A DNA stretch of 64,000 bases from Macrostomum lignano (lineage: Eukaryota). Both the position numbers and the translations under genes were made by a program. Below the pieces are notes generated by a model. That model worked only from the letters and a program-made list of their open reading frames with translations. It had not been told where the DNA came from and made no database searches. How positions within the stretch are numbered: position 1 is the stretch's first letter; every line of letters begins with the position of its first letter. The stretch spans positions 1-64,000 of the forward strand of contig NIVC01000234.1 in assembly GCA_002269645.1 (NCBI GenBank). The letters run 5' to 3'. Positions 48,919 through 55,093 of the stretch are shown here, in pieces.

Positions 48919-51900
48919 TTAGCCTTCAGCATCGTCAGGCAGTGCTTGAAACCGATTCTCAGCTTTTTTTGACTCCTGAGGTCTTTCTTGACTCCTTTTG
49001 ACTCCTTTTTTGTCTCCACAGTCTGTGGCCCTTTTCTTAATCCGTGTGGATTGGCTGGCAGAACTTCCGCTATTGGAGCTCTGCGCATTGGGTTGGCTCG
49101 GAGCTGCTACCTGGCGTGTATAACTCGAACCAGCTGTGCAATTCTCCTGGAGCCTGGAGTCGCTGTTTCTGCTAGTTGTTTCTTCCAGTTTTTTAATAAG
49201 AGCTTGCAGAGCGCTGGGAATATCTGGAAATATCGAATAAAATTTAGTAAATTTTACTTGCATATTTACTCAAGAACACGCGGAGTCTGTTCGTCTTTTC
49301 AGAATTTACTGAAGCCTGAACCAAGTAGGTTGGTGAAACAGTCAGGCAACAAAGACTACGCCCACCCTTCGATTCAAGTATCTTGCAGGCATTAGCAACG
49401 TCCCCAGTCAAGACAAATCCGAAACCCAACCATCGGATAATTACTCCAAATAGTGGGACATCTGAAGGGATATGCTGTCGAGCCAGTACTCGAACCAATC
49501 TTTTGCTAAGTAACTTTAGTTTTTAGTTACAAATTTGAAGGATCAAATGAAGACCAGGAATTTACCTCCGCGACTTTTCATGATGTTCCACAACTGCTCC
49601 TCCTCGGCACAATGAGCAAAATTGCAATTATTTCTGTAGCGGCAATCCTCTTTTTCAAAAATACTTTTACAAAGCTGGGCCTTGTTGCAGCTTGATGGCG
49701 GTAGTCTAGCTGGCCTTTGCTCTGGGCCCGCGTACACAATGCGACTCGCAGAGCCTGCTGGCAGCTCGCGGAGAATCAGCGGCAGTTCTGACGCAGCTGT
49801 GCGATTGTCTTTTAGAAACTGGTCGAATGAGAACTTTTGGGTCCTCTCCAGTTGCCACATCTTCAGCTCCAAATCTCCGTGGGCAAAGTCGCAGTCTGAG
49901 TACCTGCATTCTCCACGCCGTCCATAATTATGGCACTTAATCAGATTCCGCATTTTGAGTCGGACTCGCTGCCACTCATTGCTGGCTGCGCTGCTCTTCT
50001 CTCTGACCAGAAGGAAGCACTGCTCACAGTTCTCACATTCGGTTGTAGCCGCATTCATTGAGAACTTGCTCTGCAGCGCATCACTCGAATTGGCGCACTT
50101 GTAGCAGACCAGCTTCCAGTCACAATGGGATTGCAGGCTCCACCCAAGTAGTCCAGGCACGATCTTGTCGATCAGCTCTATGAGCTTAGCTGGCCAGTCA
50201 GCTGCAATGTTTATTAGTGGATGTTTTATCTGACCATGACCAACCTCCCAGCTCAGCTAAGCCTAGCTGATGGGACCACCAGTTGATTCCCAAGGTTGCT
50301 CTCAAATCCTGAAACTGCCCTTACCTCTTGGTTTTTTCATGACGTTCCACAACTGCTCCTCCTCGGCACAATGAGCAAATGTGCAGTTAATTCCGAGGCA
50401 TTTCTTATTTTCCAAAATACTTTTACAAAGCTGGGCCTTGTTGCAGCTTGGTGGCGGTAGTCTAGCTGGCCTTTGCTCTGGGCCCGCGTACACAATGCGA
50501 CTCGCAGAGCCTGCTGGCAGCTCGCGGAGAATCAGCGGCAGTTCTGACGCAGCTGTGCGATTGTCTTTTAGAAACTGGTCGAATGAGAACTTTTGGGTCC
50601 TCTCCAGTTGCCACATCTTCAGCTCCAAATCTCCGTGGGCAAAGTCGCAGTCTGAGTACCTGCATTCTCCACGCCGTCCATAATTATGGCACTTACTCAG
50701 ATTCCGCATTTTGAGTCGGACTCGCTGCCACTCATTGCTGGCTGCGCTGCTCTTCTCTCTGACCAGAAGGAAGCACTGCTCACAGTTCTCACATTCGGTT
50801 GTAGCCGCATTCATTGAGAACTTGCTCTGCAGCGCATCACTCGAATTGGCGCACTTGTAGCAGACCAGCTTCCAGTCATGAAACTGCAGGATCCAACCAG
50901 TCAATCCAGGCTTAATCTTGTCGATAAGCTCTCTCAGTCCAGCTGGCCAGTCTTCTGAAATATTTATTAGTGATGGGGTAACTATGATCATGAGCACCTT
51001 CCAGCTCAGCCAAGCCTAGCTGATGGGACCACCAGTTGATTCCCAAGGTTGCTCTCAAATCCTGAAACTGCCCTTACCTCTTGGTTTTTTCATAATGTTC
51101 CACAGTTGTTCCTCCTCGGCGCAGTGGGCGTAGTAGCATTTTCCATCTTGCCAATAAGGACAGGGTATGCCTCGAGAGAATTTTTCACACAGCCTTGCAA
51201 ACCGGTTATTCTTAGTCTCAGTGGGAGGCAGTCTAGCAAGAGTTTGAGTTTCTGGAGGGCCAGGAGGGCCAGTGTAAAATATCTGTCTCACACCGCTCTT
51301 GCCAGCCCTTTCGCAGATGACCAGAGGCAGCTCCGTTTGAGCATTGCGATGCTGCTTCCTGAATCTGTTGAAAGAGAACTTGCCGATCCTCTCCAGTTCC
51401 CACAGCCGGTATTCAGCCTCGCCATGCGCGGAGTCGCAGTGGGCGCGCATGCATTCGTTGCAGTCAGGAATGTCGCTGTACTTGAAGCACATTTCAAGCT
51501 TGATCAGCTTTCGGCGTCTGGGCCTGATGCGCTGCCACTTGCTGCCACTGACAGCTTTTTTGTCACGAACCAGCAGAATGACCTGCTCACAGTCCGTGCA
51601 TTGTTCTGAAGGCTCTTTGAATCTACTGCGAAGTGCATCGAACCCAGTAGCGCATTTGTAGCAGGCCCATTTCCAATCATAGTCCGACTTCAAGGCTTCG
51701 AACTTCATTGGAAAGCCGCTGACTTCTTTGTACTGAAACAAATAGATAAATTAGTATGTTCCTTCGCCTTGCCCATGCATTTAAGCTGATTATTGGGTTT
51801 TGATTATAGCAGTGCATATATCGTTCGATAGATTCATATTTCGAAAAAAATGACCACATGGCGGAATAGTGTACATGACAATACAAAAATAAATATTTCC

Positions 51901-54900: not shown

Positions 54901-55093
54901 TGTCTAAATCACAGAACATCGGCATTGTCCGGAGATTAGCTATCAAGAGCAGGCAGAGATCTGACAGCCATGGTGAGTCAGACTTTTCCGATTCAAGGTC
55001 GTCTAAAACTTTCTTGACACGTTCTTCAATGATGTCAAACTTGGCAAACCATTTTGTGTGACATTCAACTTCATTTAAGTCATTAATGTTCAT
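48919..55093 (-). CDS. Multidomain protein: TPR-like helical repeats, putative HEPN-like domain, three ZC3H7/RoXaN-type double-CCCH modules; exons 55093-52193, 51732-51078, 50954-50325, 50201-49566, 49223-48919; about 1708 aa
   Basis: All four introns are GT-AG with matching phases (0, 1, 1, 1) and the summed CDS is 5127 nt. Six C-x8-C-x4/5/7-C-x3-H fingers each end in AH...E...W, in modules of the form C-x2-C...ILL.R...W.R.R...C. TPR-like segments include HLGRLLMRKSQFEEAEQLF and MDKGIFLLKHGDVKRG. Gene structure is well supported; domain names are pattern-based. Confidence 0.85.

Follow-up and report, generated by a model that had tools for sequence, protein, structure and literature searches.

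An IFIT-like N-terminus and exon-encoded CCCH modules in a putative RNA-binding protein of the flatworm Macrostomum lignano

Vertebrate IFITs are clamps for RNA 5' ends. They have been reported only from jawed vertebrates, where they are viewed as an invention of that group that co-evolved with interferon (PMC3688568), and the pentapeptide CHFTW is invariant among them (PMC11462223). Other described proteins share parts of this architecture. ZC3H7A/B (RoXaN) combine N-terminal tetratricopeptide repeats (TPRs) with several CCCH fingers, and animal proteins that join TPRs or CCCH fingers to HEPN domains are represented by DZIP3, C6orf70 and KEN (PMC3710099). Here we compare with these systems a five-exon gene of the flatworm Macrostomum lignano, encoded on the minus strand of contig NIVC01000234.1 (positions 1 to 64,000, assembly GCA_002269645.1; this stretch of 64,000 nt is hereafter the window). 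We favor the reading, with a probability of roughly 0.55, of an intact and lineage-restricted gene whose large product binds RNA without catalytic activity and has an IFIT-type TPR N-terminus. Judged from its sequence, the protein probably binds RNA and probably lacks catalysis.

The gene and its family

The coding region (48919..55093, minus strand) runs from an ATG at 55093 to a stop codon at 48921-48919. In the splice model its five exons join in frame into 1708 residues plus the stop, with no internal stop codon, and GT..AG borders are present at all four introns. Exon 1 (52193..55093; 2901 nt, 967 residues), identified from the list of open reading frames (ORFs), is intronless and sits within an ORF of 1001 codons, far above chance. 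In it a TPR-like region is followed by a helical middle, then by a linker and a conserved C-terminal domain. Each of the next three exons encodes one zinc module: exon 2 (51078..51732, 655 nt), exon 3 (50325..50954, 630 nt, phase 1/1) and exon 4 (49566..50201, 636 nt, phase 1/1). Exon 5 (48919..49223, 305 nt including the stop) encodes a low-complexity tail of 101 residues, Ser-rich and then basic (Ser/Lys-rich), for which no Pfam family was found. The original prediction, made from the DNA letters and their ORFs, had proposed five exons spliced in frame into about 1708 residues, and its coordinates, length, 2.9-kb first exon, finger exons and tail all match. The gene is real and its architecture was correctly described. 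A tblastn search with the spliced model found no second copy in the window.

Two M. lignano database entries correspond to parts of this locus and cross its exon borders. P0002 (UniRef A0A1I8HQA1, 654 residues) shares 99-100% identity with residues 468-967 of exon 1 and reads through the exon 1/2 junction (RNYS/YKEV) into module 1. P0018 (A0A1I8HRB3, 273 residues) matches the joined sequence of exons 4 and 5 with full identity (junction SRG/DIPS) and contains most of the exon 5 tail. The same joins between modules are also seen in the paralogues P0017 (PAA56471.1) and P0015. A single full-length mRNA carrying all five exons is well supported as a prediction from these sequences.

The closest full-length relative is P0017 (GenBank PAA56471.1, 1521 residues), which has the same layout, a core and then three modules, with the same joining residue and 41-45% identity. 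Fragments of this paralogue are P0001, P0015, P0003 and P0008, and exon 1 is 41% identical to P0001 and collinear with it along the full length. When 1.84 billion representative proteins were scanned in full with HMMER, exon 1 matched only nine proteins, five from M. lignano and four from the eukaryote ENA assembly ERZ25074608, and no match was shown to belong outside the family. Word-index homology searches returned M. lignano proteins only, among the matches listed, and a profile of the zinc module found the whole module in M. lignano proteins only. Proteins of the family are already in databases as uncharacterised entries, and UniProt names the paralogues and P0018 'C3H1-type domain-containing'. 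Our literature search on this M. lignano family found nothing relevant. As far as we found, no description exists of the family or of its IFIT-like start, conserved C-terminal domain and modular tails. One further protein, P0012, had been included in a family alignment and was judged not to be a member.

What follows the core differs between family members. The window gene and P0017 carry CCCH modules, P0004 and P0007 carry long RGG repeats, and P0005, P0006 and P0009 from the ERZ25074608 eukaryote have no tail; zinc modules were absent within 10 kb of P0006 and P0009 and within 3 kb of P0005 on their contigs. P0006 also bears an insertion of 250 residues in the linker region. Because two unrelated RNA-binding tails, RGG and CCCH, occur on one core, an RNA-related function of the core itself is supported. 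The family is small, consisting of proteins from M. lignano and from the ERZ25074608 eukaryote, and several M. lignano paralogues differ in their tails.

As a side observation, the contigs of the ERZ25074608 eukaryote (L001-L003) hold at least five core paralogues as single ORFs without zinc modules. These contigs have ~38% GC and 92-109x coverage, long terminal repeat (LTR) retrotransposons adjoin the core genes, and an uncharacterised ORF of 810 residues lies 4 kb downstream of P0006.

Exon 4 with the intron before it appears to have arisen recently by tandem duplication of exon 3 and the intron upstream of that exon (49566-51077 in all). The two exons and their upstream introns share 93% nucleotide identity over 753 nt, and introns 2 and 3 are near-identical. 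Between exons 3 and 4 hardly any nucleotide differs in the central ~140 codons, and the differences are clustered at both module ends, with a ratio of nonsynonymous to synonymous rates (dN/dS) of 0.59. Such a pattern points to gene conversion or to a duplication that is very recent. Exon-wise accretion of the architecture, proposed in the original prediction, is supported by the layout of one module per symmetric-phase (1/1) exon, by the duplicated exon with its intron, and by the alternative tails of the paralogues. With a 93%-identical pair of modules and RGG tails in sister genes, the locus displays domain accretion that is still ongoing.

The IFIT-like N-terminus and the TPR-like scaffold

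The best actual argument for a role in RNA recognition is the IFIT-type N-terminus, which the original prediction had missed. The IFIT-like segment covers residues 1-175 (54569..55093, minus strand). A profile was built from the N-terminal ~260 residues of five family members and compared with 177,635 distinct PDB sequences, among which it matched only IFIT5 (E=0.0021) and IFIT1 (E=0.0026). Both alignments begin at the N-terminus and are collinear for ~155 residues, and HMMER aligned the family motif ECH[FST][TK]W onto the CHFTW of IFITs together with the flanking L..LE. The window gene has CHTKW (C11-H-T-K-W15, 55049-55063), which keeps three of the five residues of the signature; P0004 has the exact CHFTW, and P0005 and P0014 have CHFKW. 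When the scores were split, the motif alone accounted for 10.3 bits and the remainder for 14.5 bits with IFIT5, and for 9.0 and 9.1 bits with IFIT1, so the IFIT signal does not come from the motif alone.

The window protein and IFIT1/IFIT5 are alike in an N-terminus of the form L-x-x-[LV]-E-C-H-x-x-W followed by a TPR array, and in having most of the coding sequence in one large exon. They differ in several respects. The window protein is twice as long, with ~500 extra residues that include the conserved C-terminal domain, plus the zinc modules; it has CHTKW instead of CHFTW and does not keep the equivalent of IFIT5 residue K150; and it is found in a flatworm, which lacks an interferon system. 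A literature search on invertebrate IFIT-like genes found nothing relevant. On the sequence comparison, true homology of the N-terminus to IFITs stands at roughly even odds or somewhat better. If it is confirmed, the origin of the RNA-clamp scaffold would be far older than jawed vertebrates, and otherwise the resemblance would be a striking convergence.

The TPR-like alpha-solenoid extends over about residues 1-530 (53504..55093). An AlphaFold2 model of exon 1 based on the family alignment was all-alpha, with 46 helices, a mean predicted local distance difference test (pLDDT) score of 66.8 and a predicted template modelling (pTM) score of 0.47. Searched against PDB with Foldseek, this model matched TPR solenoids only (SKI3, Ctr9, IFIT5, IFIT1, OGT and LGN), with IFIT5 at rank 5 (E=7.6e-4) and IFIT1 at rank 8. 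Since the matches were all TPR solenoids, a TPR-like scaffold is supported. One family member also has strong Pfam TPR matches, and the family profile of the whole exon gave weak matches to the TPRs of LapB (about residues 475-525) and to no IFIT in PDB. The TPR-like scaffold of the original prediction is borne out by these comparisons. The best overall Foldseek E-values belonged to SKI3/TTC37 and Ctr9 (1.3e-4 and 4.7e-4), which likewise have a long TPR solenoid; their TM-scores are 0.21-0.25, with a root-mean-square deviation above 20 Å and no sequence similarity, so the resemblance is that of generic repeats only.

The solenoid is followed by a conserved helical middle (about residues 531-735, 52889..53503), delimited in the family alignments. 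It belongs to no known family and had no significant match in PDB or Pfam. Its family motifs are LLECLxLGCxD, LFFSTxxYExCA, RxxRLxxTK, ESRxxLD and YYP; conservation across the core family also includes the N-terminal ECHxxW, EHLGR, YYPFA and the C-terminal block. A linker (about residues 736-873, 52475..52888) comes next, K/E-rich, poorly conserved and variable in length, with a pLDDT mostly below 50. Exon 1 as a whole matched no Pfam family, and a single-sequence PDB search with it gave no match.

Zinc modules, C-terminal domain and candidate functions

Each of exons 2-4 corresponds to one module of ~210 residues, which adds up to six CCCH fingers and three C4 ribbons. A module opens with the ribbon (CxxC-x17-CxxC), continues with a CCCH finger and GDxELxxWxLER, then with ELPLI...YTGP...ARLP, and closes with a second CCCH finger and CAEEEQLWN. 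The two fingers follow the patterns C-x8-11-C-x4-C-x3-H and C-x8-C-x4-7-C-x3-H. Canonical spacing (C-x7-8-C-x4-5-C-x3-H) is found in four of the six, the fingers of module 1 having x11/x4 and x8/x7. The CCCH and C4 ligands are invariant in all nine modules from three proteins, and Pfam zf-CCCH scores of 19.7 bits (exon 3) and 18.7 bits fall just under the cut-off of 20.5. The pattern agrees with the six CCCH fingers of the original prediction, in which the C4 ribbon opening every module had been overlooked.

The same prediction had called the modules ZC3H7-type. In PDB the module profile did match a ZC3H7A finger (2d9m) best, with the alignment including FAHG-x-x-EL-x-x-WE after the finger, but only at E=0.022. 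TTP (E=0.046) came next, ahead of weaker matches (E=0.12-0.33) to further proteins with tandem CCCH fingers and to Roquin-1, and a single-sequence PDB search of module 1 gave no match. The likeness to ZC3H7A/B holds for the combination of N-terminal TPRs with several CCCH fingers, whereas no homology is detectable for exon 1 or the whole module outside the family, and the modules of the window gene differ in their C4 ribbon, their fixed exon unit of ~210 residues and their lack of a C2H2 finger. Neither the exon 1 scan of the 1.84 billion representatives nor the module profile found orthology to ZC3H7/RoXaN. In a further difference, from HELZ2-type proteins, Pfam found no SF1 helicase or RNase II/R (RNB) family in any exon.

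The most conserved block of the family is the C-terminal helical domain of exon 1 (residues 874-967, 52193..52474), delimited by the alignment of family members. Residues W903, W907, N912, K915, H916, H950 and E957 are invariant. Its modelled helices span residues 882-899, 903-910, 922-935 and 945-966, with a pLDDT of 57-89 over residues 882-966, and the conserved motif [IV]-N-x-[DE]-K-H lies at a helix end and loop start. A match of the C-terminal profile to a gap-junction protein (E=0.11) was rejected as chance; it falls in a disordered loop and does not include the invariant Trp residues. With ~90 residues, seven of them invariant, and no known relative in Pfam, PADLOC or the PDB sequences, the domain is a small and well-defined target for structure determination.

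In the reading we favor, the N-terminal half would form a TPR superhelix that starts like that of vertebrate IFITs, followed by a family-specific helical region and then by the strongly conserved helical domain of ~90 residues. Tandem exon duplication would have joined the three exon-encoded zinc modules to this core. Single-stranded RNA would be held by the CCCH/C4 modules and probably in the TPR groove as well, and the protein may sequester its RNA targets or mark them for other factors with no cutting of its own. A putative role in antiviral or anti-transposon defence is purely inferred.

Several observations weigh against this reading. The IFIT link is marginal (E ~2e-3), and the N-terminal profile minus its first 15 residues retrieves no IFIT from PDB under default filters. 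Foldseek places SKI3 and Ctr9 equally high as the IFITs, and the TM-scores of IFIT5 and IFIT1 (0.42-0.44, normalized to the target; model pTM 0.47) are no better than those of LGN or OGT. The column of the triphosphate-contacting K150 of IFIT5 is C, S or F in the family. The AlphaFold2 model of a zinc module has a pLDDT of 41, too poor to interpret. Finally, the seven invariant polar or aromatic residues of the C-terminal domain resemble an active or ligand site more than a passive scaffold, so 'non-catalytic' may be wrong.

An alternative that we consider rather unlikely is that the protein is an ordinary post-transcriptional regulator of the animal's own mRNAs (e.g., in germline or stem cells), like ZC3H7/RoXaN, TTP or Roquin, with no part in defence. 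In this case its IFIT-like N-terminus would be just a TPR platform for protein interactions. Such a regulator would fit the CCCH fingers of ZC3H7A, TTP and Roquin type, to which the module profile came closest in PDB, the RGG and CCCH tails, which are typical of mRNA regulators, the lack of the IFIT pocket residue K150, and the absence of any sign of inducibility at the locus. However, there is no detectable orthology to conserved regulators, exon 1 having only its nine matches among 1.84 billion, and restriction to a lineage, together with multiple paralogues and exons that are still being duplicated, is a better fit to fast-evolving conflict genes than to core regulators.

The original prediction had seen in the alpha domain at the end of exon 1 a HEPN-like fold, for which residues 874-967 are the candidate, and in the protein an RNA-sensing nuclease. 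HEPN domains are four-helix bundles with Rx4-6H where helix 3 ends, and families that lost the Arg and have a compensating basic residue are described (PMC3710099). We consider it improbable that the domain is a HEPN RNase which dimerisation on target RNA would activate. In favor of this idea, the family is most conserved in a short helical domain with an invariant N912-x2-K915-H916, this N-x-x-K-H occupies the position of the HEPN R-N-x-x-x-H with the Arg-less families as precedent (PMC3710099), and TPR+HEPN and CCCH+HEPN architectures occur in animals (PMC3710099). The evidence on the other side is broader. The position of the Arg is Ile or Val in every member, none of the eight aligned members having Arg in the motif, and the preceding helix has no Ex3[KR] motif. 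The sole Rx4-6H of exon 1, R138-H145 (R-x6-H), was rejected as it is not kept in the paralogue. No HEPN match was found for residues 874-967 in Pfam (E<=10), PADLOC (E<=10) or the PDB profile search, nor for the whole family proteins in Pfam at E<=1, and Foldseek of the whole exon 1 model gave TPR proteins only. The Pfam and PADLOC searches also found no nuclease, helicase or other enzymatic family. The HEPN-like domain is unsupported, and the nuclease mechanism built on it is therefore unsupported as well. As it stands, the gene is no evidence for a new nuclease-based immune system.

The claim that this domain combination was new to description was also overstated, given the TPR+HEPN and CCCH+HEPN proteins already known in animals (PMC3710099). 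The TPR-HEPN proteins of animals (DZIP3/hRUL138-type and C6orf70-type) resemble the window protein in joining TPRs to a small helical domain, and these families have expanded in a lineage-specific way among invertebrates, with links to zinc ribbons (PMC3710099). The window family differs from them in having no catalytic Arg and no match to any HEPN model.

We regard as similarly doubtful a broader form of the nuclease idea, in which the protein would be a protostome counterpart of IFITs whose C-terminal domain is a degenerate or re-invented HEPN-like RNase, the whole acting as a self-contained sensor and effector against foreign or transposon RNA. If this were true, the IFIT-type RNA 5'-end clamp would predate vertebrates and interferon, and CCCH or RGG tails would be interchangeable RNA-binding parts.

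It is very improbable that the model is a chimera of two neighboring genes, one for TPRs (exon 1) and another for zinc fingers (exons 2-5), as the fragmentary database entries at the exact locus (654 and 273 residues) and the existence of finger-less family members could suggest, since P0002 itself spans the exon 1/2 junction, exon 1 is open up to its GT donor with no earlier stop, exon 2 has no start context of its own and is in phase with exon 1, and PAA56471.1 and three UniProt paralogues fuse both parts at the same residue.

Flanking elements and the rest of the window

Remnants of mobile elements lie on both sides of the gene. A pol remnant of an LTR retrotransposon of the Ty3/Gypsy order (~43100-45300, plus strand) retains a zinc knuckle, an aspartyl protease, a sliver of reverse transcriptase, RNase H and integrase. 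At least two frameshifts break its reading frame into at least three overlapping ORFs in three frames, most of the reverse transcriptase is missing, and no pair of LTRs was found nearby. On the other side, a remnant of a protein-primed type B DNA polymerase (PolB; PF03175, ~57500-58800, plus strand) falls into three ORF pieces, lacks both ends of the profile and contains one or more in-frame stops and one or more frameshifts. The pieces are consistent with a Polinton/Maverick remnant, PolB being the only element gene looked for. The broken pol at ~43.1-45.3 kb and the broken PolB at ~57.5-58.8 kb agree with the Gypsy and Polinton flanks of the original prediction. These remnants carry no information on the function of the gene.

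Tandem repeats are present at several places in the window. A satellite-like array at 11169-14049 (minus strand), with units of WHCYHGIIMALLS..., is open in several frames, and the ORF of 911 residues found there was rejected as a gene because it is repeat-derived. Minisatellites were found at 40000-40627 (28-bp units x22), at 41893-43078 (17-bp units x70, which reads as an ORF of 422 residues) and at 47306-47719 (a CAC-rich array of 22-bp units).

Parts of two other genes may be present. An exon of a DEG/ENaC amiloride-sensitive sodium channel (PF00858, E=2e-30) lies at 5406-6278 (minus strand), perhaps together with 4255-5187 on the same strand. An ORF at 26057-27187 (plus strand) weakly matches the second half of the nuclear-receptor C4 zinc finger (PF00105, E=7e-4) and possibly represents an exon from a nuclear receptor gene.

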